Virus record (IMG/VR): IMGVR_UViG_3300017528_000567
Span: 1 to 64,000 of that record
Length of the DNA stretch: 64,000 nt
Direction: 5' to 3' (one strand)
The notes under the pieces are model-generated. The model saw only the letters and a program-made list of their open reading frames with translations, was not told the DNA's origin and ran no database searches. Below are positions 1 to 42,628 of this stretch, one piece after another. The position numbers and the translations under genes are program-made. The first letter of the stretch is position 1. Each line of letters starts with the position of its first letter.

Positions 1-297
1 ATGGGAACGAAGTTGAAACTGGTTGCACAGAAGATCGACATCAGCACCGCGATCCACCAGATCTCGGAAATGACTGCACGTAACGACCACACGGCCGCCT
101 ATGTAGCCGGCGCCAAGGCTCTCGGGGCGAAGGAGCTCGCAAAGAAGCTCGACCTGGTGCGGCAGCTTGTAGACTTGGAGGGCTGTTTACCCTCAAAGCT
201 GTCCGACTACCGGCACGGGCTATACGAACAGCTCATGGCGTTCGCGAAGCAGGAGCTTAGCGCCAAGGATTTCGACCAGTTCTACCGCGCGTTTTGA
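1..297 (+). CDS. hypothetical phage protein (may be 5'-truncated at the window edge)
   Basis: 98-aa helical ORF starting at base 1; upstream context not visible. Confidence 0.6.
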   Translation: MGTKLKLVAQKIDISTAIHQISEMTARNDHTAAYVAGAKALGAKELAKKLDLVRQLVDLEGCLPSKLSDYRHGLYEQLMAFAKQELSAKDFDQFYRAF

Positions 298-2926: not shown

Positions 2927-2961
2927 CTTGAAGTTTAGCCCCTGTCGATTGTCTTGAGGGC
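2927..2961 (+). promoter_or_regulatory. class-I promoter-like motif
   Basis: CTTGAAG-N13-GATTGT-N9-ATG. Confidence 0.8.
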
Positions 2962-3429
2962 ATGACCCAACAAATCACAACCAAGTCAGACGTTGCCCCG
3001 GCCCCGCGCACGGCGTATGCCACACCCGCTGAGAACATTGGCAAAGCCATTGACCTCCTGAACTACCTGCCAAACGGAGTGGCGGCGTGGGTCGAGGCAC
3101 ACGACGGCAATCAAGAGTTGGCTGAAGCAAACGGGGAGCAAATCAAGCAGCTCGTGAACCAACTGGGGGCGATTCTGGCCTCTATGCCAAGATCAGCGGT
3201 CTACAACGTGTACGGAGTAGGCGACAAAACCTTGACCTTCTCGAGCTCGGCAGAGTTGATCGCGGCAATGGCCGGCATGGGAATCAAACATGTTGGCTAC
3301 TCATCTAGGACATCACGCCTTCGCCCCGAGCTGAAAGGGCAACCCACATTCACGTCGCTCAACGGCCCCATGTACGACGGCGGAGGCAAGATCAGATATG
3401 AAGGCCGCGGTGTGGGCACCATGTACTAG
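2962..3429 (+). CDS. hypothetical protein (C-terminal GQP...GPM...RYE motif)
   Basis: 155-aa ORF directly after a class-I promoter motif. Confidence 0.75.
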   Translation: MTQQITTKSDVAPAPRTAYATPAENIGKAIDLLNYLPNGVAAWVEAHDGNQELAEANGEQIKQLVNQLGAILASMPRSAVYNVYGVGDKTLTFSSSAELIAAMAGMGIKHVGYSSRTSRLRPELKGQPTFTSLNGPMYDGGGKIRYEGRGVGTMY

Positions 3430-3430
3430 G

Positions 3431-4252
3431 TCACAGTCGCAACGCCTTCAGCGCGGTGAACTTGTCCGGAGCCTTGGCCTTAAGATGGCCGGGCTCCAGT
3501 GCATAGCTCGCGAAGGACTCTGCGAAGTCTTCAATGTTTGGCTTGCTCTCCGCATAGTCAGAGATGAAAGGCGGCTGACCCCACGGCGGCGCGTTGAGGT
3601 CGACGTGGTGCCGCTCCTCAACACCATGCCCCAGCTCGTGAGTGATGTAGGTCGCCAAGACGTCGATACTAGGCACGTGCCCCTCTCGGAGCACTAGGCG
3701 CATTGTGCCTTGACCATCCCAAGAGGCGTCCTCTGAACCGCGGGCCTTGTTCGCCAGCAGTATCTTGCTCACGACGCCCATGGCGCGTTTTGCGGGCGCC
3801 TTGAGCTTTTTGAAGGCTCGGCTCCACAGCGCTATTAGCTCTGGTGCGTCCTTGCGGTGTTCGAGCGAGCCCTCGTAGGTGACGTTCTTCCCGGTGATTT
3901 TCTCGAGCTCGCGGCGGGCGTCGTAGAACGAGGCCTCCGGCTTGCTCTTCGGGGCTCGCGGCATTGCCACGTCTTTCAGCTCGGCGACCTGTGGCGGTTC
4001 GAGGCCCGACCAGCCCTCGAACCATTGGAACAGCTCGCCAACGGTCTTCGGGACGTCATACACGTCATTCGCCGCAATCTGTTTCAACCAGCTTTGCGTA
4101 CGGCGAATCGTCGACGTCCAGCCCCCGCGCCACTCGGACGTTTCGGAGGTGTTCTCCGCCTCCATGAACGCGATGAGCTTTTGCAGATAGGGGGCAGTGA
4201 CGGGCGCCGATTCGACAAACCGCGCCAGCACGGCGTGAGCAACGGAGTACAT
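3431..4252 (-). CDS. zinc-dependent metallopeptidase (HExxH, anthrax-LF/MuF-associated type)
   Basis: THELGH plus downstream SDYA...EDFAESF; N-terminal AVLARFVESA motif; start uncertain. Confidence 0.7.
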   Translation of the reverse strand: MYSVAHAVLARFVESAPVTAPYLQKLIAFMEAENTSETSEWRGGWTSTIRRTQSWLKQIAANDVYDVPKTVGELFQWFEGWSGLEPPQVAELKDVAMPRAPKSKPEASFYDARRELEKITGKNVTYEGSLEHRKDAPELIALWSRAFKKLKAPAKRAMGVVSKILLANKARGSEDASWDGQGTMRLVLREGHVPSIDVLATYITHELGHGVEERHHVDLNAPPWGQPPFISDYAESKPNIEDFAESFASYALEPGHLKAKAPDKFTALKALRL

Positions 4253-4293
4253 GTAGAGGGAGCTTGAAAAGACCTCTACCGACCCCGTTGGCA

Positions 4294-4608
4294 TCATGCT
4301 CCTAGTCGCTCCCTGACCTGCTGCAGAACGCCGGTCTCCTCCCGCATCCACCGATCGAGGCGGCTGGTCTCAAAGCTGTCCACCGGCTCAGCTAAATAGG
4401 TGGTGGCCGGTCTAAACACAAAGGATAGACCTTCGGGAGAGGTGAGCTCCTCGGGCGCTTCGTAGGGGTCGTCACTCCCTACCCCGCGTAACTTCCAACC
4501 AAGCGCGCGTGCAACACTGACCCATGCAGACATGGAGGCAGGAGTTGCCTTGAGCACCTCTTTAAATATACCGACACCCGGAGACTGATTTTTGCGCTTC
4601 TTGGTCAT
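4294..4608 (-). CDS. hypothetical protein
   Basis: 104-aa ORF MTKKRKNQ...; GAGGGA upstream. Confidence 0.6.
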   Translation of the reverse strand: MTKKRKNQSPGVGIFKEVLKATPASMSAWVSVARALGWKLRGVGSDDPYEAPEELTSPEGLSFVFRPATTYLAEPVDSFETSRLDRWMREETGVLQQVRERLGA

Positions 4609-4636
4609 ACCGTGTCCCTCAATGTACGCTGCAATG

Positions 4637-4852
4637 CTAGTCAACGAGAGATTCGCCAACCTCAAGAATGTCGTAGCCGGTGGACTCGATTGCGGCACTC
4701 ATTGCGGCATCTACCGCCGCATCCTCCGAGCTCGCCAGTGCGACGCACCGAAACCTGGAGGGAAGATCCACCGCATGGATGGGACCGGCCTGGTCGCAGG
4801 TGGAGTCGCCCCAAGTGATATTGCGGAGAGTGACGGTATAACGCCGCGGCAT
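4637..4852 (-). CDS. hypothetical protein
   Basis: 71-aa ORF MPRRYTVTLRNITW; ATG sits 9 nt after a class-I promoter motif. Confidence 0.7.
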   Translation of the reverse strand: MPRRYTVTLRNITWGDSTCDQAGPIHAVDLPSRFRCVALASSEDAAVDAAMSAAIESTGYDILEVGESLVD

Positions 4853-4887
4853 GTCCTGAAGACAATCGACACGGGGCAAACTTCAAG
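4853..4887 (-). promoter_or_regulatory. class-I promoter-like motif
   Basis: CTTGAAG-N13-GATTGT-N9-ATG. Confidence 0.8.
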
Positions 4888-5029
4888 GGCACCAGCTGGT
4901 CGTCGAGCTGGCGGAATGGACCCAGCTTACGGGCTCGTCGCAAACCGTTTATGACACATCATGTGAAACGGGTTACGATGTGTGCACGAACGGCACTCCA
5001 ACAATCCTGTGGTAGAAATAGACAGACCC

Positions 5030-5725
5030 ATGACCTACGACTTTCGACGTGAGGCGTCGGACGCCAAGAAGGCACTCAAGGATCTCTACCTGTGGCTCCG
5101 CGGCAAGTACGATCAAGGGTATGGCAACCGTATGAGCCCTCAGCTTGAGGCCGGCCTGCGTGCGTTGGGTGTCGAGCCTGGTGATGAGCTGCCACGGCGT
5201 CCGTCCGGCGCGGTGCCACGTGCTCTGTACGATCTGGTAGTGATGGCTGGAGAGCACCACGTGTATGAGTCCGATCGCGAAGTGCTTCTTGAAGCTGCCA
5301 ACAAGGCGCTCGGCGGCAACGGCCACGAGCTACCGGGGGAAGCAGCGCCAAAGTCCTCATTCACTCGCAACAGCAAGTGTCCGAAATGCGGCAATCCCGG
5401 TCCTCACGAGGACAACGGGAAGAAGGGCCGCGATCAGGTGTTCTACTGCGACGAATGTGGCAAGGCGTTCGGCGGCACCATGATGAACCTGTCAGCTGCC
5501 GGTCGACCGGTCGCGACTTCCGATGGGGAGATCATGTTGGACCTGTACGATTTGACTGGTGACCATGAGCCGGTGTCGCTCGCTCAGTTCATTGCAGACA
5601 ACAGTGCCCCAGATGTGGCACCGCTGGACCTCCAAGACATTGCTGCGTTGCGTCGGCTCCGCGTCGGACAGCACGTTTACCTCGGGATTGGCGGCGGTGG
5701 CGTCAAGATCAAGCGCATCGGGTGA
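5030..5725 (+). CDS. hypothetical protein with zinc ribbon
   Basis: CPKCG...FYCDECGK; starts MTYDFR, similar to the 1039 gene. Confidence 0.7.
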   Translation: MTYDFRREASDAKKALKDLYLWLRGKYDQGYGNRMSPQLEAGLRALGVEPGDELPRRPSGAVPRALYDLVVMAGEHHVYESDREVLLEAANKALGGNGHELPGEAAPKSSFTRNSKCPKCGNPGPHEDNGKKGRDQVFYCDECGKAFGGTMMNLSAAGRPVATSDGEIMLDLYDLTGDHEPVSLAQFIADNSAPDVAPLDLQDIAALRRLRVGQHVYLGIGGGGVKIKRIG

Positions 5726-5866
5726 CCTGATTTCCCAGAAAGCTCGCAGAGGCTGGTCGGGATGGACTGCCTCGTGAATGACGCACTTGGTGTAGCCGTA
5801 GGCATGAGCCTCGCCTACACCAGACCTTGACATTCTTCCTGTCTTGGAAGTATCGAGAGTTATACA

Positions 5867-6079
5867 ATGTACAATTCTCGAGCTAGTACGACCAAGCCGC
5901 TCCTTATCGAGGAAAACGTCCCGCCGAGACGCAAGCCAATCGACTGGGAGGTCTTGACTGCGGATGAGCTCGGCGACCTCGCGCGTCACGGCAAGGATAG
6001 TTCGACCAAGAACACCGCCCTCATGCATCTAGTCAAGCGAGCGAGCATCGTCGATCCGCACGTCCGCAAAACGGCCTAG
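5867..6079 (+). CDS. hypothetical protein
   Basis: 70-aa ORF; TTGACA at 5827 upstream. Confidence 0.45.
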   Translation: MYNSRASTTKPLLIEENVPPRRKPIDWEVLTADELGDLARHGKDSSTKNTALMHLVKRASIVDPHVRKTA

Positions 6080-6104
6080 AGCATGCGCGGAGCTCAGTGC
6101 TTGC

Positions 6105-6139
6105 CTTGAAGTTCGACCGTTGTCGATTGTCTCTCACGG
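6105..6139 (+). promoter_or_regulatory. class-I promoter-like motif
   Basis: CTTGAAG-N13-GATTGT-N9-GTG. Confidence 0.8.
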
Positions 6140-6586
6140 GTGAGCAAGAGCTTGAAGAATCTCAGGGGGCTTCTGCCAGGTGGCTATGTTCGGGGAGAGA
6201 GGCTTAGCCTGGACCGTCTTGGCGACGCCCTGGCCGACGCAATCAACAGGATTGATCGGAGAGCCCGCTGTGTGGCTGAAGACGCCGGCCTGCCGGACCC
6301 CGCGCCGCGCTTCGGGCAAATCCTAGCCGACCTGCATGCGCTCTTGACTGGCGGTACGACCGGGGCGCGCAAGGCGGAAGTAGCAGCCGATCTCCTACAT
6401 GGAGAAGTTACGGGGACCACCCTAACCATCGGCAGCGTCACGCATGACATTGACTGGGTCGTGATGCGTGAAGTGACTGACCCGACAATCATCGTCGAGG
6501 ACGGCACGGTCATCTACCTGCGGAGCTGGGCCGACCACAGGGCCGCGCTGCTCAAGCTCGGCGCTGACCACGTCCCCGGGAGATAG
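6140..6586 (+). CDS. hypothetical protein
   Basis: 148-aa ORF; GTG start 9 nt after a class-I promoter motif. Confidence 0.7.
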   Translation: MSKSLKNLRGLLPGGYVRGERLSLDRLGDALADAINRIDRRARCVAEDAGLPDPAPRFGQILADLHALLTGGTTGARKAEVAADLLHGEVTGTTLTIGSVTHDIDWVVMREVTDPTIIVEDGTVIYLRSWADHRAALLKLGADHVPGR

Positions 6587-6595
6587 TCACCGGCT

Positions 6596-6619
6596 GGTGC
6601 CCGGATAGGCAGGGACTGG
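6596..6619 (+). repeat. half copy of the AATGGA-loop palindrome
   Basis: GGTGC-CCGGATAGGCAGGGACTGG; 3' arm missing. Confidence 0.6.
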
Positions 6620-6679
6620 CGGCTCGTTCGCGAGCGCTGCCTAGCCTAGAATCCTGGAGAAGTCCTACCTGAGAGCAGG

Positions 6680-7072
6680 CTAGGTGCTCAACGTTTTGTA
6701 GATGGTTGACCAGAAATCTGCGACATCGTTGTCGTCGAGGTGGTGCTGGAGCTTGCCTGTGGGCGCAGTGTCCATGATGCGCTCAGACGTTCTACGCGAT
6801 TTGGGAATGCGTGACGCCACCACGGCAATGATCCGCGCCACCACTACAGGTGCACCCGGCACCTGCTCTCCCGCTCCGCGGCAAGCCTTCCGAAACTTCC
6901 GCAACTTCTGCGCGAAGCTCTTCTCATGAAGTTGGGTCTCCAGCGTGAGCCCATTCTTGTGAGCCAGGCGCTGTAGGCAGAACATGCTAAACGCATTTGC
7001 GAGGCTGGACTCTAGTTCGTTTTCCAGCGCGTTCTGTGCTTCTGGCAGTGGCTTCGCAAGTGCAACCCTCAT
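6680..7072 (-). CDS. hypothetical protein, paralogous to the upstream ORF (LDDxDxAxFW motif)
   Basis: In frame with 7076..7510 across one TAG; C-terminus KLQHHLDDNDVADFWS. Confidence 0.6.
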   Translation of the reverse strand: MRVALAKPLPEAQNALENELESSLANAFSMFCLQRLAHKNGLTLETQLHEKSFAQKLRKFRKACRGAGEQVPGAPVVVARIIAVVASRIPKSRRTSERIMDTAPTGKLQHHLDDNDVADFWSTIYKTLST

Positions 7073-7075
7073 GAC

Positions 7076-7510
7076 CTACGGGATAGCACGTTCAGCGGCC
7101 ATGGTCTCATCGACGCGCGTCCAGAAACCTGCGGTGTCTTGGTCGTCCAACGTCACACGTAACTTGTTGATATCCGGGACCTTTTTAATGAACTCGCTGA
7201 CTGCCTTGCGACGAATTCGCTCATCCGCGCTCTTCACATCGGCAATTGTCTCCTGGACGGCCTTACCTCGATCGCTGAATCCTTGGATGGCGTGCTCCAT
7301 CGCGTTAGAGAACGCTGTCAACAGTTTTTTGACCTCGGTGTCCCATGCCGGAACCGAAGCCATGTACCCAGTCTTCCGACCTAGGCAAGCCTTGTAATAC
7401 TCCCGTAGTCCGCCTTTCAGGTGCTTGGCCAGGCCCGCTTTGTAAAGCACCCGATTGTGCGCCATCGCGAATAGGAATCGCCTCGTGATGCGCGTCGCCA
7501 AATCGTCCAT
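7076..7510 (-). CDS. hypothetical protein (N-terminal RITRRFL motif)
   Basis: 144-aa ORF; C-terminus KLRVTLDDQDTAGFWT. Confidence 0.7.
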   Translation of the reverse strand: MDDLATRITRRFLFAMAHNRVLYKAGLAKHLKGGLREYYKACLGRKTGYMASVPAWDTEVKKLLTAFSNAMEHAIQGFSDRGKAVQETIADVKSADERIRRKAVSEFIKKVPDINKLRVTLDDQDTAGFWTRVDETMAAERAIP

Positions 7511-7555
7511 GTATTGCTCGCCGCCAATTCTCGTGTCGGTGCTAGTCTCTCACTG

Positions 7556-7654
7556 TCAGCCTCGCAGCAGGGCACTGGTGCCTTGTGCCGCTGTTCCAAG
7601 TGTTCTGAGCTGCAGCTCGAGCTCCAGTTCACTCGTATTGGCGATCTTGCGCAT
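7556..7654 (-). pseudogene. truncated MRKIAN-module ORF (32 aa)
   Basis: MRKIANTSELELELQL then diverges and stops; keeps the full conserved upstream element. Confidence 0.6.
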
Positions 7655-7675
7655 GGGTCTGGGCGATCCTTTCGA

Positions 7676-7701
7676 GAGGCTCGGACTTGTGCGCCGTGCC
7701 C
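7676..7701 (-). promoter_or_regulatory. conserved 5'-leader hairpin of an MRKIAN gene
   Basis: GGGCACGGC-GCACAA-GTCCGAGCCTC. Confidence 0.7.
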
Positions 7702-7768
7702 TTGTTACAGAGCTCGAACCACAAGTGCTTTACTGCGCAGAAACAACGACGCTAGCGTTGCCCCCAGC

Positions 7769-7775
7769 GGTGTAA
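7769..7775 (+). promoter_or_regulatory. class-II motif GGTGTAA
   Basis: 8 nt before ATG 7784. Confidence 0.7.
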
Positions 7776-7783
7776 CAACCCAC

Positions 7784-8260
7784 ATGGATGACATTCGGCC
7801 GCTCGGGTCCGTAGAAGTTAGATGCGCTTACCCAGGATGCAACTGGAGCTTCTGGGTAGATTGCCTGGACCCAAGGCTGCCCGTCGGGCCGTTTGATTGC
7901 GGGGCCGACCACCAAACGCAAGCGCGAGTCAACGCTGCCCTAGAGAAGCTAGACAATGCCGGCCTGGTCTATCAAACAGCCGCGGGACCTGGCTGTGGTT
8001 GCGGAGGGCCGACCCAAAAATCCGGGTGCGAGCCGCCTCCCGCGCAACCCCCTACGATGACGACCGGGTATCTGATGCTACGGCTGCGCGAACCGGACTT
8101 TGATGGGAGTCAAGAGATGTGGGCCGCGGGTCGATTTGCGTGGGCGACTTGGGCCTCTCTCGGCGATCTTGAGGCGCTTCCGTGCGACGCCGGGGCCTAT
8201 CATTGGATGCCCCTTGATGAGGCGAGTCGTAACCGCCCAGCGGGTTACACAGGCCCTTGA
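7784..8260 (+). CDS. Cys-rich hypothetical protein
   Basis: ATG 8 nt after GGTGTAA; CAYPGC, DC, CGCGG motifs. Confidence 0.7.
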   Translation: MDDIRPLGSVEVRCAYPGCNWSFWVDCLDPRLPVGPFDCGADHQTQARVNAALEKLDNAGLVYQTAAGPGCGCGGPTQKSGCEPPPAQPPTMTTGYLMLRLREPDFDGSQEMWAAGRFAWATWASLGDLEALPCDAGAYHWMPLDEASRNRPAGYTGP

Positions 8261-8293
8261 GCCAAGAAAGCTCTTATCTGCTGCGCTCTGTGA

Positions 8294-8316
8294 AGGCACG
8301 GCTGAGGTCCGGCCTC
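8294..8316 (+). promoter_or_regulatory. conserved 5'-leader hairpin of an MRKIAN gene
   Basis: AGGCACGGC-TGAG-GTCCGGCCTC. Confidence 0.7.
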
Positions 8317-8337
8317 AACCCAAGGGAGCCTTGACCG

Positions 8338-8883
8338 ATGCGTAAGATCGCCAACACCCACGAGCTACAGGACGAGCTGCGGAAGCTCATCGCTTACACA
8401 GGGAGCAATAGGCCCTCTAGAGAACGCATTGCTCTAGAACTGAAGACCCTTTCAACTCGGCTCGCTTCTAGTGGAGGCCCGCTCCTGGACGCCAAGGTCG
8501 AGTGGGCGGTGGAGCTCGGTGAGCTCATGAAAGCACGATTCAGCGGCGTCGGCGGCTGGCGAGACCACCACATCAACATCGACATGCACCGCACAAACTC
8601 TGGATGCACTGTCAATCTAGAGAGCCCCCTTGGATGGACTAGCAACATCTATATCGAGATGGGCGAAGGCGAGCAGGCAGTCCATGTCTATTTCAATGTG
8701 TCAGAGCCCAAGGATACGCCCACGGGTGCAGACGGATTGCCCGACCTCGACGCCATTGACCTGACCGACCTGATCGGGAAACAGAAACGCGAAAGCTTCC
8801 CTATCAAGGACCGCGAGCCTATGGCCAAGGCGATGATGGCCGTGTCACTGTGGATCTCGAAGCAGATTCAAAGCGGCCGTTGA
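8338..8883 (+). CDS. MRKIAN-module protein 2
   Basis: MRKIANTHELQDELRKLIAYTGSNRPSRERIALELKTLSTRLA. Confidence 0.85.
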   Translation: MRKIANTHELQDELRKLIAYTGSNRPSRERIALELKTLSTRLASSGGPLLDAKVEWAVELGELMKARFSGVGGWRDHHINIDMHRTNSGCTVNLESPLGWTSNIYIEMGEGEQAVHVYFNVSEPKDTPTGADGLPDLDAIDLTDLIGKQKRESFPIKDREPMAKAMMAVSLWISKQIQSGR

Positions 8884-8905
8884 CGTCGCTCTGCAGCGCG
8901 ACGCT

Positions 8906-8940
8906 AACCGGATAGGCAGGGAATGGACCCTGCTTATCCG
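8906..8940 (+). repeat. AATGGA-loop palindrome, copy 2
   Basis: AACCGGATAGGCAGGG-AATGGA-CCCTGCTTATCCG. Confidence 0.9.
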
Positions 8941-8946
8941 TCTGTA

Positions 8947-9294
8947 TCAGTTGCCTGTGTCTGCTGTGATCAACCAGATCAATTTTCCGAAGACATCGTC
9001 CAGTTCGGTGACAACAGTTGCGAATTTCCGCACGGCAATTTTTGTGTCAGCGCTGAGTCCGCGACTCCCCATCAGTCCGCGGGCGACCTTCTTCACTTGT
9101 TCTATTGGCCCTTCAATACTGGCGACCAAGCGTCCCTCGTCAGTCAGCTCAGCCGTATGCTCGCCGGCAACGCGGGCACGGAGAGACTCGAGCTCGCTGG
9201 CGAGCCGAGAACGGGATGGTTTATCGGTCTGAGCATAGGCAAGCAGGCGGCGCAGCTCGATCTCAAGTTCATCGGCATCGGCAATCTTACGCAT
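8947..9294 (-). CDS. MRKIAN-module protein 3
   Basis: MRKIADADELEIELRRLLAYAQTDKPSRSRLASELESLRARVA. Confidence 0.8.
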   Translation of the reverse strand: MRKIADADELEIELRRLLAYAQTDKPSRSRLASELESLRARVAGEHTAELTDEGRLVASIEGPIEQVKKVARGLMGSRGLSADTKIAVRKFATVVTELDDVFGKLIWLITADTGN

Positions 9295-9317
9295 TGGTCT
9301 GGCACCTTTCTAGAGTG

Positions 9318-9342
9318 GAGGCCGGACCTCAACGCCGTGCCT
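9318..9342 (-). promoter_or_regulatory. conserved 5'-leader hairpin of an MRKIAN gene
   Basis: AGGCACGGC-GTTGAG-GTCCGGCCTC. Confidence 0.7.
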
Positions 9343-9394
9343 TCAAAAGGCGCGCTCGATAAGTGGTTGCTCGACGGCCTGCCTATCCAAGATG

Positions 9395-9577
9395 TCATCG
9401 CTTGCGCTTCTTCGCTTGCGGCGTAGGCGCAAGCGACTCCATCCGTTCGGCACGCTCCACCAAAGCCTCTGCCACTGCGTCAGGTGGTAACCCGGTCAAT
9501 TCACCGAGCATCGCGAAATATGCCCCGTCAGGGAGGTCGTCGTCGACAATGAGTAGGGCCGTCGCGATGTCCATCAT
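9395..9577 (-). CDS. small hypothetical protein (DDDLPDGAYFAM)
   Basis: 60 aa; ATG 9 nt after GGTGTAG. Confidence 0.7.
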   Translation of the reverse strand: MMDIATALLIVDDDLPDGAYFAMLGELTGLPPDAVAEALVERAERMESLAPTPQAKKRKR

Positions 9578-9586
9578 GGGAAGGCT

Positions 9587-9593
9587 CTACACC
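9587..9593 (-). promoter_or_regulatory. class-II motif GGTGTAG
   Basis: 9 nt before ATG 9577. Confidence 0.7.
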
Positions 9594-9772
9594 GACACGC
9601 AGCCAGGCGTAAAGCCCAGGGGCTCAAGGTCAGCTGCCGATTCGCCACGTGGGCGCGACGCGGCTCATTCGCCGCGGGTTTTGGCCTCCTTTGCGAACGG
9701 CTTGAAGTTTCGCTCTGGCCAAGACGTATTTGCAGGAACCGCCTGATATCAGGAACGAGAGGGTCAGACGTC

Positions 9773-11311
9773 GTGACCAAGAAGAAGCCGCCGAACCCCA
9801 ACCCGCAAAAGGCAGAGCTAGACGGATTGGTTTTCATCCTCCGAAATGGGAGATACGAGGTGGAGTTGCCCCACCCGTTCCGACCAGGTAGACATTGGCA
9901 CACCCAGAAGTTCGAGACTCGAGCCAGCGATTTGCAGGAAGCCCGGCGTATCGCTGGTGTCCGTTGCCAAGCTGACGTCGAGCTCGCCGCGCTCGTCGAT
10001 GATGAGGAGGCCAGCCGCCGTCTGGAAGTGCGGGACAAGGTAATCGGCGCCCTGCTCCGCCATTCCTACGGGAGCCTGCCAGCAGTCGAATCTATTCGTT
10101 CTAAAGTGGTCGAGAAGTGGCTGCGGACCATCGAGTCGTTTTCGATCGACCCCTTCACGGCAGTCCAGACCGTTCCGATCGTATTCCCGCCAGATGTGCC
10201 AGGCTCGTGGAAGCCGCCACGTCCGCTCGCATACTGGATGTCCCGCAAGGGTGCCCAAAGCATGCAAGCGCAGGAGACGTACCTCCACACTCAGCGGAGG
10301 ACGACATACAGCAGCGACGTGTTGGACTTCAGTAGCGTGTTGGCCACGTGCGATGAGGAAACCGGCTGGGGTTACGGTGCGAAACTCAAGGGCGTGTCGG
10401 AGACGGTCCATCTACTGGCCCGAGCCCGCAAGAGTCGTGAACTACTAGCGCGCGTCTTCCTACGTGCCTCCCTCCACAACACGATCGTGCGCTTTCGCCT
10501 CTCTGAGGATCCAAACGCCCCCCAACGTCGTCTAGACAACCGGCGGTATCCTGAGACTCCCTACCATGTCGAGTCGGACGACGGTGAGCTTGTCCTGGCC
10601 CTCGCCGGCCTTTGTGGCGAAGACCCGTGGCATCATGCGAGCAAGCAAACATTGCCCGACGTGATGGTTTCGCACGGCGAAAACTACCTTACCAGTTTCC
10701 GGTCCAACGATCATCGCCTTGACAACAGCCGGCAGCGCGAGATTACGGTCCGCAGCCTCAGCGAGCTGGTTGAACTGCTCGCAGTTGAGCACGCCCGGGT
10801 GATTGCCCAGCACGTTGTGGTCCTCTTCGTGGACGAGCAGAACCCAGACCCAGACCTGGAACTCTCCCCATACGGACACGAGGAAAGGCGGCCAGTCCTC
10901 CCGCCTCGTGAACCGCCTTCACGGGATGAGCGCCTACTAGAGATCAAGGCAGACCTGTTCGACGAGCTGAAGAAGTCACCCGCCCTGCAGGCGCAAGCTC
11001 GGAAGCGGATGAAGGATCGCCCCAAGCCGCAACCGCCGAAAGCTGACCCGACGCCCCCAGCCGAGCCGCCCAGCGGTAGCCCTCAAGAGGATCACGAGCT
11101 CCGTGCGGTCGATGCGACCGCGCAAGCAGTCACCGCCTCGGTTGAACCCCCTGCCGAGCTCAAAGCCACCCCGGCCTCAGTTCAAGCGCCCCGTCAGCCG
11201 CGTCGCCACGCTTCGGTCGAGAAGGTGCAGCCCATGGCCAAGACGTACAGCTATCTCGAGAAGCTCAAGGCCCGGAAGCGCAAGCGAACTAACCCACAGG
11301 AGACGACATGA
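9773..11311 (+). CDS. large hypothetical protein, possible N-terminal Arm/AP2-like DNA-binding fold
   Basis: 512 aa; GTG start with GAGAGGG upstream; Pro/Lys-rich C-terminal tail. Confidence 0.75.
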   Translation: MTKKKPPNPNPQKAELDGLVFILRNGRYEVELPHPFRPGRHWHTQKFETRASDLQEARRIAGVRCQADVELAALVDDEEASRRLEVRDKVIGALLRHSYGSLPAVESIRSKVVEKWLRTIESFSIDPFTAVQTVPIVFPPDVPGSWKPPRPLAYWMSRKGAQSMQAQETYLHTQRRTTYSSDVLDFSSVLATCDEETGWGYGAKLKGVSETVHLLARARKSRELLARVFLRASLHNTIVRFRLSEDPNAPQRRLDNRRYPETPYHVESDDGELVLALAGLCGEDPWHHASKQTLPDVMVSHGENYLTSFRSNDHRLDNSRQREITVRSLSELVELLAVEHARVIAQHVVVLFVDEQNPDPDLELSPYGHEERRPVLPPREPPSRDERLLEIKADLFDELKKSPALQAQARKRMKDRPKPQPPKADPTPPAEPPSGSPQEDHELRAVDATAQAVTASVEPPAELKATPASVQAPRQPRRHASVEKVQPMAKTYSYLEKLKARKRKRTNPQETT

Positions 11312-11386
11312 GTCACCCCGGAGCTCGCATGAGGGGGTGCCCCTCTTGGGATCATCTCGTGTTTCCCTAGACATGCAATTGGCAGG

Positions 11387-11448
11387 TAACCGGATAGGCA
11401 TGGAATGGACCTTGCCTATCCGGTTAGCACCCCCTGAAAGTCTGGAAA
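11387..11448 (+). repeat. AATGGA-loop palindrome, copy 3, plus left inverted-repeat arm
   Basis: TAACCGGATAGGCATGG-AATGGA-CCTTGCCTATCCGGTTA-GCACCCCCTGAAAGTCTGGAAA. Confidence 0.9.
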
Positions 11449-11554
11449 GTCTGTACGGGCGCGACGTGGCCTTGGCTGTGCACGCGGAGTCGCCTACCTA
11501 CGATGAGCTGTACAGCGGGAGTTGGGTGCATGCCGCGTAGTGCCCCCAGATTAG

Positions 11555-11589
11555 CTTGAAGTTTCGGGCCGCTCGTTTGTATCTACGGC
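11555..11589 (+). promoter_or_regulatory. class-I promoter-like motif
   Basis: CTTGAAG-N13-GTTTGT-N9-ATG. Confidence 0.75.
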
Positions 11590-13200
11590 ATGGGCAAGCG
11601 AAAGTATAGGACACGGGAAGAGTGGCATGCGGACTTGCGGCAGGTGTGCGCCAGCAAGAACTGGGAGATAGTTGGCAATCTCCCGGACGCGGCGAAGCAA
11701 AAGTTGACCCTGCGCTGCAAAAACCACGAGAAAGGTGTCGATGCGCCGGAGGGCTACTACGAATGGCATCCGGTGCCGGGGGATATCTTTCAGGGTAAAG
11801 GGTGCCGCCTCTGTTCTGGTGTCGCTCCATTGACGAACGCCCAAGTCGCGTTCTCGGCTAGCCAGGTAGGATTGACACTGTTTCCCCAGTCTCAGCGAGT
11901 GACGAACAATAGGGCTTCCCTCCAGTTTCAGTGCAATGAGTGCAGCGACGTTCGACGGTATATCGTATGTAACGTTCGTAACGGGCAAGGCTGCAAACCG
12001 TGCGCTGATAAGAGGAACGGTCTGTCCCGTCGAATCCCAAGAGCTACGATAGTTGCCCGGCTTGCTGTTCACCGACTCAAGTTCGTCAGCGTGGCGCATC
12101 CCGATGGTGATGATGCGCACGTCACCTATACATGTCGGTTCGGCCACATTCATACACAGGTGCTGCACACACTAAAGAAGAGCAAAGGGTGCGCGATTTG
12201 TAGCGTCTTGCCGCGCCGCGAGACGGTACTGAGACAGATTCTCGAATACCTCACGGGGTTCAAGTGGCCGAAGCAGAGAGTCGCCTGGTTGCTAAGCCCG
12301 AAGCGCCGCAAGCTAGAGCTTGACGGCTACTGTAAGGAGGTTGGGTGCGCTTTCGAGCACCAAGGGGAACAACACTACAAATTTGTGGCTCTCTGGAGCA
12401 AATGCCAAAACTACGACCAGTTGAAAGTCGCGGGCTGTCGCGCCGAGGGGGTCAAACTCCTAGTTACTGATGAGAAAGGCTACGATAAAGCCGAGAAGAT
12501 GGGCGGGACGGCGGGCCTCGTGCGTTGGGTAGCTCGGCTACTTGCGGATTTGAACGTACCGATGCGACCAAACCCAGGCCAGTTTAGACTCGAATTCAAC
12601 AGTACAACGGCGGAAGCGCGCACGAGAGAATGTCATGAGTTTGCCAAAGCCAATGACGGCAAGTTCTTGGACCCGGTATGCATCGCAGCCTTAGCAATGA
12701 ATCGCTGGCTCTGTGCGACTCACGGGAAGTTCGAGAGAAGCTTGACCGACATGAAGACAAACAAGAGCTGGTGCCCGAAATGCGGCCGTGAGCTATCTGG
12801 TGAAGCTAGACGCAAACCATTTGTGACACTCTCCGGCTTTCGTAAAGAGTGCAGGCGCATAGGCGTTCGGAGCAGAGACACGTATACGCAGGCTAAGAAG
12901 TCTGGGGCGTTCCAGGTCTTGGCACCGGTAGACGTGATAGATTACTACAAGCTCCCACTGAGCAAGCTATTCCAAAAATCCAGCATGCATGGCGACCCTT
13001 GGCAGTACACGGATGAGCACGACGATCCCGCCGACCTGAAGGACCACCCGAATGCGAAGATTCGGCGCCTCTCGTCGGGGAGGCTCCGTCGTGCCGTGGC
13101 CCTGCCCAAGAAGCAGCCCAAGGTCCCTGCCAACGACAACGTTGATGCACTGGCCGACCGCTTGAACGCTATCTACAGCGGGCGCGAGATCCCCGACTGA
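11590..13200 (+). CDS. multi-zinc-ribbon PD-(D/E)XK/Vsr-like endonuclease (putative homing-type), copy 1
   Basis: Multiple CxxC pairs; LELDGYCKEVGCAFEHQGEQHY nuclease-like motif. Confidence 0.75.
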   Translation: MGKRKYRTREEWHADLRQVCASKNWEIVGNLPDAAKQKLTLRCKNHEKGVDAPEGYYEWHPVPGDIFQGKGCRLCSGVAPLTNAQVAFSASQVGLTLFPQSQRVTNNRASLQFQCNECSDVRRYIVCNVRNGQGCKPCADKRNGLSRRIPRATIVARLAVHRLKFVSVAHPDGDDAHVTYTCRFGHIHTQVLHTLKKSKGCAICSVLPRRETVLRQILEYLTGFKWPKQRVAWLLSPKRRKLELDGYCKEVGCAFEHQGEQHYKFVALWSKCQNYDQLKVAGCRAEGVKLLVTDEKGYDKAEKMGGTAGLVRWVARLLADLNVPMRPNPGQFRLEFNSTTAEARTRECHEFAKANDGKFLDPVCIAALAMNRWLCATHGKFERSLTDMKTNKSWCPKCGRELSGEARRKPFVTLSGFRKECRRIGVRSRDTYTQAKKSGAFQVLAPVDVIDYYKLPLSKLFQKSSMHGDPWQYTDEHDDPADLKDHPNAKIRRLSSGRLRRAVALPKKQPKVPANDNVDALADRLNAIYSGREIPD

Positions 13201-13212
13201 GGCAGCGTATCC

Positions 13213-13247
13213 CTTGAAGTTTGGCCCCCGCCGATTGTCTTTACGGT
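13213..13247 (+). promoter_or_regulatory. class-I promoter-like motif
   Basis: CTTGAAG-N13-GATTGT-N9-ATG. Confidence 0.8.
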
Positions 13248-13451
13248 ATGACCCAAGTAGCCCTCAAGACGACGCCCACCCTGGAGTTTGTGCTCAAGGT
13301 CGACGGCGAGTACGCCATCGGGATCGAGGCGGCAAGCATCGAGGACGCTCAAGCCTTGGCACTGGCCGATGAGTGGCTGGAGCAGCGCTCTGCGCGCCTC
13401 GTAGAGGTCGGCAACGACAACAACCAGCTCGACTTCGTGGTGGGGCGATGA
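13248..13451 (+). CDS. small hypothetical protein
   Basis: 67 aa; ATG 9 nt after a class-I promoter; ATGA overlap with the next gene. Confidence 0.7.
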   Translation: MTQVALKTTPTLEFVLKVDGEYAIGIEAASIEDAQALALADEWLEQRSARLVEVGNDNNQLDFVVGR

Positions 13452-25683: not shown

Positions 25684-25713
25684 ACCCAGAGCAGCAGATA
25701 AAAGGGCTAGGCG

Positions 25714-39984: not shown

Positions 39985-40856
39985 AGTCCTGGAAGCCCCC
40001 CACCTGAATTGTTACGTCCCCCGCGACCCCACTTCTTTAACTTGGAGCGACCCCTGTTCTGCAGAGCGCCGGGCTCCGCCGTGAAGGCCTCCTTGGTCTC
40101 GATTGAACCAACCACGGGCTCGATATCGAGGCCCATCGCCACGGTCTCCCCGAGGGCCTGCATGCTAGCGCGGAGCTCACGGGCCGCCTTGACGTCGCCT
40201 CCTACATCGACGACTTCAAAGTTGTTCGTGATGTATGTCCCTACCGTATCGTTGTAAAACTTGTGCCCATCGCCAAAGTACTCCTCGCCCTCGATGAGCC
40301 AGGTTGGCTTGGATTCGGTCGCCCTGATATTGAGAGCCTCTTGAAGAACGTCGCCCGCCGCCACGTTCTTGTAGCCAAGTTGCCCTAGTCTGACGATCAG
40401 CAGAGAGCAATCGGAGATCAGGTCGCTGAGGTTGTTGAACGTGGCAAGGTCATCCCGGACCTTCTTCGACCGGTTACTGTACGAGAATTGGCCCAACCAC
40501 ACGCGCAAGAGCTTTTCATCGTTCACCATCCGAAAGGAGAAGCCCGGCAACACCGACTTTTTCCCGGACAGTGCCCACCTAAGATGGGCCGCAGCTTCAG
40601 ACCACACGCCCTTGATGAAAAGGTTGTCTAGAGTGCGGTCCCCGATGACCTGATTGGTCTCGGGGTCGAGCTCCGGCATGAAGAGCTCGCTCTTGTGGTG
40701 CTTGGCTCTCGCGAGCTCCGACCCCAGGAACTGGAGCATCATCTCGCGCCGAAGGCAGAGACAGGGCCAGGATGCGATCTCACCATCCCGAACCTCTTCA
40801 CGCCACTGCTCACCGTTGCAGAGACGGCATACCGGAGGACTATTGACTTGAGTCAT
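39981..40856 (-). CDS. DnaC/IstB-like helicase-loader homologue (degenerate P-loop)
   Basis: N-terminal CRLC...PCLC Zn site; LLIVRLG at the Walker-B position; directly upstream of dnaB. Confidence 0.55.
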   Translation of the reverse strand: MTQVNSPPVCRLCNGEQWREEVRDGEIASWPCLCLRREMMLQFLGSELARAKHHKSELFMPELDPETNQVIGDRTLDNLFIKGVWSEAAAHLRWALSGKKSVLPGFSFRMVNDEKLLRVWLGQFSYSNRSKKVRDDLATFNNLSDLISDCSLLIVRLGQLGYKNVAAGDVLQEALNIRATESKPTWLIEGEEYFGDGHKFYNDTVGTYITNNFEVVDVGGDVKAARELRASMQALGETVAMGLDIEPVVGSIETKEAFTAEPGALQNRGRSKLKKWGRGGRNNSGGGLPGL

Positions 40857-42612
40857 TGGCTCGGCTCCTAAGGCTGTTGGCTAGGTCAACCGTGAAGTTC
40901 GAGCTGCGGTCAAAGTCCAAGGCTCCGACCGCAGACTCACCAAGGACCTTGTCTATGAGGTCCTTTTTCTTCTGAAGAATCTCGAGCGTGTAGTGGTCGA
41001 TGGTTTTGCGCTGCTTCTCCGTGCTGCGTGGGCGCTCGGCTACAAGGTGCAGCGCGATCACGTGTTGGTGCGGCGAGCCGATACGAATTGGCCGGCCAAG
41101 CAGCTGCACGTAGTTGCCCCAACTCCACGGGGCGTTGTAGAAGATCATGGCTGACGCCGCCTGGAGGTTGATCGCCTCCGAGCCTGCGTCGGAGATGAAG
41201 ATCACCCGTACACTGGATTTCAGGTCCTGAAACGCATCCTGTGCTTTTTTGCGCGCCGGGTTGCTCTTCGTATCCGTGACCTTGCCGCTCACCTCTACAC
41301 TCTCGATCCCGGCCCTTTTGCAGATGTCGCGCAGGCGAGTGATCAGAGACGTGAAGCGGCAGTAGACGATGACTTTCTCATCGCTGAACTCTTCAGTCAG
41401 CAGATCGAGCAAGGCTTGCTCCTTGGCGCCCAAGGCGCGGACTTCCGTTTCCTCGCCGCTGACAACGTCGAGCTCGATCAAGTCTCCCGCGTCGTACTTG
41501 AGCAGAGACATCGAATCGACGGTCTTTTGACAGTAAATCAGCGCGACAAGGGTCTTGTTGTCAGAGTAGTCCTTGAGATTGCCGTCGCCCAAGGCGAGCA
41601 TGCCGGACAAGGCCTCGCTGTACTTTGCGTCCTCAGCGGCCGAGAGCTCGCACGCGACCTCCCGAGTGATGAGCGTCGGCAGCTCGCTCGAGATCTCGTG
41701 CTTGGGTCGGCCCAAGAAGAATGGATCAATCCGGTCGCGGAAGGCCTGCAGGTTCTTGTAGCCTACGACGATCGGGATCTTCCGTGACCCGGCTACGCTC
41801 TGCAGTCTCGTGACGCAGTACTCGCGAAGGAAGGCCGACTTGGTCGTGAAGACCTGCGAGTAGATCACCTTGTAGATCGAGAACCCTTCGATCAGGTTGT
41901 TCTTCAGCAGCGTGGCGGTTAGCCCATAACAACGACTCGCTCGGTCGGACAGCTCTTTGCAGACCTGCCATGTCTTGGTGCGGTCGCTCTTGAATGCCGT
42001 CGCTTCATCGAAGGCAATGGTGAGGTGCGGGATGCGAGCCGTGATCCCGTCGAGGGTCCCACGGACAGGTGGCACCTTCGGGTCTGGCTTGCCTTTGATC
42101 AAAGGTGAGGGCTTTGCCCCTTGATGCCAGTCTCGCACAAGGGGCGCGTACCCCATCAGCATCACCGGCTTCGTGGGTCCCTTGTGCAGGGCGAACTCTA
42201 GATACGTTTGCTTGCGCTCGTTTGGCGTCCCGTCGACAACGTATGTGGTGATGCCCGTGGTGAACTTCTCGATCTCGGAACACCATTGGCGAAGTGCCGA
42301 CTTCGGGCACACCACAATGACCTTGTTGTCGGGCTCTTTTTCCCACGTGTAACAAAGGGATGCGATCAAGACGAGAGTCTTGCCTGTGCCCGTGGCATCG
42401 CCGAGCACCATCCGCTTCATACTCAGCAGGTGGAAGATTGCCTGGACCTGGTAATACCTGATCGAGAGTGGCTGCAGCGTGCCATCCAGGACTTGGATCT
42501 CCTGGCGCAGCATCCCGATTGGCTTGAGCGTTACGTCTTTGCTAGCGCGGACCTTTTTGAGGGTTTCATAGACCTTGGCGTGCTTGGAGGTGGTGTCTTC
42601 AGAGGCTGCCAT
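40840..42612 (-). CDS. SNF2-family (SF2) helicase/ATPase
   Basis: DATGTGKT, VVCPKS, DEAT, LTATLLKN, KVIVY, GSEAINLQAA, QLLGRPIRIG. Confidence 0.92.
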   Translation of the reverse strand: MAASEDTTSKHAKVYETLKKVRASKDVTLKPIGMLRQEIQVLDGTLQPLSIRYYQVQAIFHLLSMKRMVLGDATGTGKTLVLIASLCYTWEKEPDNKVIVVCPKSALRQWCSEIEKFTTGITTYVVDGTPNERKQTYLEFALHKGPTKPVMLMGYAPLVRDWHQGAKPSPLIKGKPDPKVPPVRGTLDGITARIPHLTIAFDEATAFKSDRTKTWQVCKELSDRASRCYGLTATLLKNNLIEGFSIYKVIYSQVFTTKSAFLREYCVTRLQSVAGSRKIPIVVGYKNLQAFRDRIDPFFLGRPKHEISSELPTLITREVACELSAAEDAKYSEALSGMLALGDGNLKDYSDNKTLVALIYCQKTVDSMSLLKYDAGDLIELDVVSGEETEVRALGAKEQALLDLLTEEFSDEKVIVYCRFTSLITRLRDICKRAGIESVEVSGKVTDTKSNPARKKAQDAFQDLKSSVRVIFISDAGSEAINLQAASAMIFYNAPWSWGNYVQLLGRPIRIGSPHQHVIALHLVAERPRSTEKQRKTIDHYTLEILQKKKDLIDKVLGESAVGALDFDRSSNFTVDLANSLRSRANDSSQ

Positions 42613-42621
42613 CGTGGGCAG

Positions 42622-42628
42622 CTACACC
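42622..42628 (-). promoter_or_regulatory. class-II motif GGTGTAG heading the replication operon
   Basis: 9 nt before ATG 42612. Confidence 0.7.

Follow-up and report, generated by a model that had tools for sequence, protein, structure and literature searches.

A putative family of alternative-sigma promoters in fixed register with start codons in the accessory region of a probable huge soil phage

The first 64,000 nt of the virus record IMGVR_UViG_3300017528_000567, called the window hereafter, carry a bipartite DNA motif, CTTGAAG-N13-GWTTGT (class I), which recurs on both strands in front of open reading frames (ORFs), mostly at one set distance from the start codon. Our preferred explanation, held with some confidence, is that class I represents a family of promoters for an alternative sigma factor of the extracytoplasmic function (ECF) type, probably phage-encoded, at which transcription would start on the start codon itself. 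The parts of this explanation are not equally firm: class I is very probably a promoter, transcription is likely to begin at or within a few nt of the start codon to judge from the sequence, and the balance tips slightly towards a sigma factor made by the phage.

The window is the beginning of a 255,478-bp IMG/VR record (58.6% G+C) that is labelled 'provirus' and corresponds to bases 178,366-433,843 of a Joint Genome Institute (JGI) contig, Ga0187305_1079523 (433,843 bp). The other 178 kb (contig bases 1-178,365) had been removed by the virus database as 'host', the trim point being window base 1, on the ATG of the first ORF. Since the G+C and both promoter motifs (class I and the class II motif GGTGTA) of this trimmed part equal those of the record, it is phage, not host; the source is most likely a huge uncultured soil phage of ~434 kb. 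A relative of 416,539 bp (87% complete according to CheckV) is collinear with the record at 15-125, 130-205 and 230-248 kb, and both record ends, including window 1-15 kb, are without counterpart in it. This puts the class I sites in an accessory region that is hypervariable and is cut by both the contig break and the trim, and it bears out the location that an earlier note on this DNA had given them.

Exactly five class I copies are present in the window, on both strands as the earlier note had seen, with no match in 100 dinucleotide shuffles. They align as cCTTGAAGTTT, nine variable G+C-rich bases, CG(A/T)TTGT, nine bases and a start codon (Table 1). The minus-strand copy, previously placed at 4853, is real, although that position is its start-codon-proximal end and the motif itself runs from 4887 to 4862; it diverges from a plus-strand gene beginning near 4982-5030. 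No extra window site was found when a longer class I pattern was allowed three mismatches. As a count of the family, five is nevertheless too low: a position weight matrix (PWM) scan of the 255-kb record gave six sites at 38-48 bits (the next best position scored 14 bits), and the 63 kb of trimmed contig upstream of window base 1 hold six further ones (at -56373, -14910, -14583, -14227, -13570 and -34 in record coordinates), which makes 12 good sites. Four of the upstream six start with CGTGAAG instead of CTTGAAG, and the same four carry TGTATC instead of TGTCTT.

Each copy sits in a short intergenic gap and is oriented towards the next ORF, with five consecutive small genes sharing four copies between -15 and -13.5 kb. 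The motif behaves as an independent cassette, not as part of a duplicated gene, because the downstream proteins are unrelated: they are mutually dissimilar and have no family matches. The product of the 536-aa class I gene has its relatives in low-GC phages that lack the motif, and none was found for the 155-aa gene beyond a twin of the phage that is 98% identical. An exact-pattern scan of IMG/VR gave three sites in this twin and, apart from that, a single contig of 11.9 kb, IMGVR_UViG_3300027760_000441, which is unrelated and has a perfect strict match at 7730-7757 and an ATG 6 nt downstream. This contig has no blastn or tblastx similarity to the phage, such a number of matches is about that of chance, and the match, probably fortuitous, was rejected.

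Table 1. Features discussed in the text. Positions are those of the record, of which the window is the first 64 kb; negative positions lie upstream of window base 1.
Feature	Position	Strand	Details
Class I site (putative promoter)	2927..2961 (motif 2927-2952)	+	CTTGAAGTTT-N9-CGATTGT-cttgagggc; ATG 2962; 155-aa ORF, no family match
Class I site (putative promoter)	4853..4887 (motif 4887 down to 4862)	-	ATG 4852-4850; 71-aa ORF 4637-4852
Class I site (putative promoter)	6105..6139 (motif 6105-6130)	+	CTTGAAGTTC-N9-CGATTGT-ctctcacgg; GTG 6140; 148-aa ORF
Class I site (putative promoter), TGTATC subtype	11555..11589 (motif 11555-11580)	+	CTTGAAGTTT-N9-CGTTTGT-atctacggc; ATG 11590; 536-aa ORF
Class I site (putative promoter)	13213..13247 (motif 13213-13238)	+	ATG 13248; 67-aa ORF 13248-13451
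Class I site (putative promoter), just outside window	-34..-1	+	CGTGAAGTTT-N9-CGTTTGT-atctggagc; would drive 98-aa ORF 1..297, ATG = window base 1
Class I site (putative promoter), sixth of record	228540-228515	-	Found by PWM; ATG 23 nt downstream, behind GGAAGG
Sigma-like gene, 321 aa	240147-241112	-	Reached via weak region 2 matches in two relatives
Sigma-like gene, 277 aa	239284-240117	-	Adjoins 321-aa gene, in tandem; reached in the same way
Tandem region-4 protein, 208 aa	163955-164581	-	Two sigma-70 region 4 domains, no region 2 (region 4 search)
Class II element	7769..7786	+	GGTGTA, 9 nt, ATG of 158-aa ORF
Class II element	42613..42628	-	GGTGTA-N10-ATG before SNF2 helicase gene 40840-42612 (minus)
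Class II, further window copies	15053, 15448, 16127	+	
Class II, further window copies	9593, 21656, 25087, 26985, 30216, 33244, 47578	-	
Genes of the trimmed part			Type IB topoisomerase-like (1192 aa), RNase HII, D12 methyltransferase, adenylosuccinate synthetase
Genes of the trimmed part (continued)			Poly(A) polymerase-family protein, Eco29kI-like nuclease, TerC, 2',5' RNA ligase-family protein

The distance to the start codon is a defining feature. In all five window copies, a start codon (ATG in four, GTG at 6140) follows GWTTGT after exactly 9 nt and opens an ORF of 67-536 aa. The same is true of 8 of the 12 sites, which makes a distance previously described as invariable a frequent, not an obligatory one. 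Leaders are present at the other four sites (16, 23, 32 and 33 nt), and in three of these cases a Shine-Dalgarno sequence (GGAAGG, GAGGAG or AAAGG) precedes the ATG. In the 9-nt gaps of the window sites, no usably spaced Shine-Dalgarno sequence was found, in line with the earlier description of the gaps as mostly devoid of one; GAGG or AGGA occurs in two of them and stops 1-2 nt before the ATG.

A constant 9-nt gap without Shine-Dalgarno sequence in eight sites might suggest that the motif acts at the RNA level, as a translational element for ribosome recruitment or for processing, yet this is highly improbable. The four sites that are uncoupled from the start codon, three with a Shine-Dalgarno sequence of their own, argue that the element acts on DNA and transcription, not as a ribosome signal; the sister motif GGTGTA is found 10 nt before a tRNA gene as well; no secondary structure is conserved at class I sites; and no Rfam family was found in window 1-17 kb. 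A hairpin flagged in class I spacers by a terminator scan is present in two of them only and was rejected.

The base composition around the predicted start offers a second line of evidence. Counted by column over the 12 sites, C1, T3, G4, A5, A6 and G7 are invariant, T occupies positions 8-10 in 8-9 sites, and the second conserved block reads T-C-G-A/T-T-T-G-T-(A/C)-T. The tenth base after GWTTGT is a purine in 12/12 and the ninth a pyrimidine in 11/12. This purine holds in the four leadered sites, where the start codon does not impose it, and the pyrimidine is demanded by no start codon. A pyrimidine at -1 followed by a purine at +1 (Y-1/R+1) is the usual start preference of bacterial RNA polymerase, and where the start codon comes after 9 nt, the pair puts +1 on its first base, A or G. 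Together with the constant register, this pattern leads us to infer that mRNAs made from such class I sites would be leaderless.

With the tenth-base purine as +1, TGAAG falls at -33..-29 (GAAG at -32..-29), and the T-tract at -28..-26 (T at each of these positions in 8-9/12 sites). TGT is invariant and occupies -12..-10, and the base after it is A in six sites, C in five and T in one. The functional -10 element is thus probably TGT(A/C)T, at -12..-8. A 13-nt gap, which the earlier note correctly saw as constant between the halves of the pattern, fits no sigma-70-family promoter. When the boxes are read as AAG-N17-GT(A/C), a spacing found in 12/12 sites, they fit normal promoter spacing, so that GWTTGT would be a displaced box and the 13-nt gap a mere by-product.

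This geometry appears to fit the promoters of ECF (group 4) sigma factors best, and better than those of sigma-32. Sigma-W, for instance, has the spacing TGAAAC-N16-CGTA. In B. subtilis, the promoters of sigma-W, -X, -M and -V combine the -35 sequence tGAAACnTTTt, whose T-tract lies at -26..-29, with CGTA or CGTC as the -10 element (PMC5758882). These ECF promoters have in common with class I a bipartite layout in which a GAA-containing -35 core is followed by a T-tract. Further likenesses are the ~17 nt from the -35 core to the GT(A/C) core of the -10 element, the alternation of A and C at the last -10 position, and the sigma-like proteins of the phage itself, which resemble ECF sigma factors most. 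Class I departs from these promoters in that its -10 block is far longer (-17..-5), its sigma factor is probably viral and its start would lie on the start codon.

Other known promoter types match less well. Sigma-32 (RpoH) promoters of E. coli read CTTGAAA-N13-15-CCCCATnT. A likeness to their -35 box had been pointed out before and is real in 8/12 sites (CTTGAAG), although ECF geometry is closer and the other four sites have CGTGAAG; the -10 half, recognised as unlike sigma-32 from the outset, is TCGATTGT(A/C)T, with no CCCCAT in the 12 sites. Housekeeping sigma-70 promoters (TTGACA-N16-18-TATAAT, with A-11 and T-7) do not fit, G being invariant at -11 and C outnumbering T at -7; canonical sites of this type are not enriched (40 in 318 kb vs 50.6 +/- 6.3 in shuffles), a further point in favour of an alternative sigma factor. 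A sigma-28 reading (TAAAGTTT-N11-GCCGATAA) was rejected, for the boxes are similar but the class I spacer is 4 nt shorter, and so was sigma-54 (GG-N10-GC), for there is no GG at the needed place. In T4 middle promoters, the MotA box has its centre at -30 and precedes a sigma-70 -10 element by 11-13 bp; with the start codon as +1, the upstream class I box would likewise have its centre near -30, but it comes without a TAnnnT -10 element, and no MotA or AsiA homologue turned up, no search having been aimed at one. Finally, the leaderless genes of Actinobacteria and Deinococcus-Thermus have a -10 element at a fixed distance before an ATG or GTG that is also the start, and the housekeeping sigma factor reads it as TANNNT. 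Class I sites share with them the fixed, short distance between a -10-type element and the start codon and the missing Shine-Dalgarno sequence, and differ by TGT(A/C)T with G-11 and by a dedicated -35 box.

A third line of evidence comes from the 416-kb relative, which has a family of its own in its accessory region, made of an A/T-rich stretch, cTTTAGATT (the TTTAGATT box), ~14 bases, GGGTAG and ATG. With this box at positions 1-9, GTA falls at 25-27 and the ATG at 36, which is the same register as in class I. In the record under study, TTTTAT-N10-GGGTATG stands before three ORFs (at 25703, 141598 and 233386, minus), and the GGGTATG ending is common in the class I-like family of the relative.

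A sigma factor encoded by the phage, which the earlier note had thought worth looking for elsewhere in the genome, is probably present twice, in two tandem sigma-like genes at 239.3-241.1 kb. Their products of 321 and 277 aa give sub-threshold ECF-family matches only, look-alikes by language model and by structure suggest sigma factors, and some of their homologues are annotated as sigma-24 by JGI. They were modelled by AlphaFold with pLDDT values (predicted local distance difference test) of 88 and 77, from 38 and 16 homologues, respectively. Foldseek found nothing significant with these models, a hidden Markov model search of the PDB with the sigma-like alignment gave no match, and no relative was found with the same alignment in 185,579 species genomes. 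We regard both proteins as probable ECF-like sigma factors. The pair is kept in relatives at only 37-47% identity and evolves faster than core genes. Between the 321-aa protein and its orthologue in the 416-kb relative, identity is 57-71% in the sigma-2 part and 32-39% in the C-terminal domain. Such C-terminal divergence is expected if this domain reads the diverged -35 box, and conservation of the sigma-2 part fits a conserved -10 core. Upstream of the pair lies a stretch of ~1 kb (record 241113-242160) that is free of ORFs, lower in G+C and, read on the minus strand, has TTGACA-N17-TAGAGA ~80 nt before the ATG; it might hold a promoter of host type or encode a non-coding RNA, or do neither.

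In the mechanism that we propose, host core RNA polymerase carrying an ECF (group 4)-type sigma factor, most likely one of the tandem pair, would bind a -35 element C(T/G)TGAAG(T/A)(T/A)T and a -10 element TCG(A/T)TTGT(A/C)T and initiate on the purine that is the tenth base after GWTTGT. As this purine is also the first base of the start codon (A or G) in two thirds of the sites, the mRNA would there be leaderless and translated without a Shine-Dalgarno sequence. Each promoter would drive a different small gene or short operon of the hypervariable accessory region, on either strand.

The identity of the sigma factor is where an alternative has to be weighed most seriously, namely that class I promoters are read by a sigma factor of the host (ECF, heat-shock-type or an unusual housekeeping one) and are truly immediate-early. 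The CTTGAA box is that of sigma-32, TTGAAG agrees with TTGACA at 4/6 bases, and a setting in an accessory region, among small genes that lie on either strand, is typical for early host-takeover genes, for whose transcription canonical sigma-70 promoters would otherwise hardly serve, not being enriched. We nevertheless consider a host sigma factor unlikely: the -10 part fits neither CCCCATnT nor TATAAT and has an invariant G-11, the phage has sigma-like proteins of its own, and a phage factor that evolves fast accounts more readily than conserved host sigma factors for the different -35 box in the same register of the relative.

Class I sites might also belong to an unrecognised phage RNA polymerase (multisubunit, single-subunit or crAss-like, possibly carried in the virion), for which window ORFs of 1697, 1463, 873, 832 and 781 aa without Pfam or PHROG match leave room, and to which a long, precise block (-17..-5) with a fixed start would be well suited, since these are typical of phage polymerase promoters. 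This is improbable, given that the bipartite layout, the variable 9-nt spacer and the canonical -35/-10 distances suit a sigma holoenzyme and that the sigma-like genes are kept across the clade. Moreover, Rpb2_6/multisubunit and T7-type polymerase families were not detected in the record and five relatives (one of them 87% complete), the T7-type search having had no positive control.

Very improbable, too, is that the boxes form the operator of a regulator and overlap separate core promoters. Two unlike boxes about two helical turns apart would suit such an operator, and the record encodes a candidate reader, a 208-aa protein with two region-4 helix-turn-helix (HTH) domains in tandem (Table 1). 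It is promoters, though, that are characterised by strict orientation, by a constant spacing from the start codon and by the Y-1/R+1 signature, and no other promoter-like signal accompanies the sites. The 208-aa protein itself is an unlikely reader of a variable box because relatives in which the box differs retain its first HTH at 90-98% identity. The 416-kb relative has a second, diverged copy of this protein.

The record also contains a simpler, promoter-like motif, class II, with the consensus yGGTGTA(g). Among 91 occurrences, a start codon follows after exactly 9 nt in 20 and after 10 nt in 8. The class II list comprises 32 sites in the whole record, with no -35 element: nothing but a pyrimidine is conserved upstream of GGTGTA, and the profile of its reverse complement is flat. 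The gap between two tRNA genes also contains a copy, 10 nt upstream of the second gene's 5' end (record 208107, minus). The register extends to three clade genomes in all, the second being the 416-kb relative, where the distance is 9 nt in 38 cases and 10 nt in 18, and the third a 323-kb relative. In relatives, class II is kept before the orthologue of the SNF2 helicase (Table 1) and the following gene (61-76% protein identity), with different flanking bases. Position-specific k-mer scans gave nothing convincing in the way of a third motif class. A hybrid site at record -1477 (minus strand), the thirteenth if counted with the 12 good ones, combines a perfect CTTGAAGTTT box with a class II-like second half, GCGTGTAG, 3 nt farther away than usual, and has a 33-nt leader with AAAGGAA.

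Phage sigma factors with phage-specific promoters are of a known kind, for which experiments provide precedent, as are leaderless genes. The sigma factor gp36 of phiEco32 reads tAATGTAtA, with starts 6-8 bp downstream, and gp47 of phage 7-11 reads the bipartite GTAAtg-N16-aCTA (PMC8948821). As proposed here, an ECF-like phage sigma factor steers host core polymerase to phage-specific promoters in these systems, and the motifs of related phages differ as their sigma factors diverge. Their single-element TGTA type resembles class II, and their bipartite type with ~16 nt resembles class I. The single-element type of gp36 is matched by class II, with its start codon 9-10 nt downstream and no upstream conservation, and not by class I, with its strong -35 box. 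The differences are considerable: phiEco32 and 7-11 are 77-kb enterobacterial podoviruses with these promoters before middle and late genes, whereas in the present ~434-kb phage both types coexist, there is a tandem pair of sigma genes, and the bipartite class is that of the accessory region, with the majority of its sites set for leaderless mRNAs.

Several observations weigh against promoters read by an ECF-type phage sigma factor. Some concern the motif: (i) the -35 core is AAG where AAC is the ECF hallmark, (ii) the -10 core is TGT where ECF promoters have CGT and (iii) most -10 elements of the sigma-70 family differ from class I, which has G at -11 and no conserved T at -7. Others concern its distribution, since the 12 sites were counted over 318 kb of the 433,843-bp contig, the exact motif (with at most one mismatch) occurs at control level only in five clade relatives, and what appears to be conserved of class I is its register alone, in one relative only. 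Neither sigma-like gene is tied to class I over the more abundant class II, and the sequencing data that contain the phage are DNA metagenomes (19 studies), none of them RNA. Last, a requirement for a phage-made sigma factor would mean that the accessory genes are not immediate-early, which is odd for genes resembling those of host takeover. Timing is also where the earlier note, which had proposed an early promoter read by an alternative sigma factor, of the host or of the phage, and a start at or near the start codon, fares unevenly: motif, register and Y/R signature make such a sigma factor and start the best-supported explanation at the sequence level, but 'early' finds no support, and a phage-made sigma factor would, we infer, make the class middle, as in phiEco32.

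Taken with class II, these promoters may be part of something more general, which we put forward only tentatively. The clade of soil phages above 400 kb might use a two-tier promoter code for leaderless mRNAs, in which a clade-wide, -10-only GGTGTA serves dozens of core genes (and a tRNA) and a lineage-specific bipartite class serves hypervariable accessory genes, the -35 box of this class (TGAAG in the present phage and TTAGA in the relative) co-evolving with the C-terminal domain of a phage ECF-like sigma factor with the -10 core and the register kept fixed. If so, a large share of genes would be expressed without a Shine-Dalgarno sequence and independently of host promoter specificity, and if a huge phage expressed its genes in this leaderless way systematically, there would be consequences for the translation of early genes and for the range of hosts that can be used. 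What is new is a computationally defined, putative two-class promoter code with a fixed start-codon register in an uncultured lineage of soil phages above 400 kb. It has value for annotation, since it gives exact start codons and operon heads and since 178 kb trimmed as 'host' turned out to be phage. It also offers what may be a natural case of co-divergence between a -35 box and a sigma domain, and two divergent sigma genes whose specificity could be tested in vitro without the host.

As for the phage itself, the record, in which ORFs were translated with genetic code 11 only, encodes a family A DNA polymerase, DnaB-like and SNF2 helicases, and baseplate- and tail-like proteins. Its 38 tRNA genes are clustered between 200265 and 230988, all on the minus strand, among small ORFs and GGTGTA elements. 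No close cultured phage was found, megablast of window 2-14 kb vs GenBank phages giving no match; near-identical DNA was found in the soil and rhizosphere metagenomes of the 19 studies. Strains at least 99% identical are present in four soil or rhizosphere runs (5,901 nt compared), with no listed variant in the three motifs covered, which says little, as only ~1 was expected. Directly upstream of the first class I site of the window, an ORF at 1504-2853 matches DnaJ (J-domain) and, weakly, Mu GemA. The most repeated words of the genome are 10- to 12-mers around GAGCTC (e.g. CGAGCTCG), present in up to 18 copies, which may reflect Glu-Leu codon pairs.

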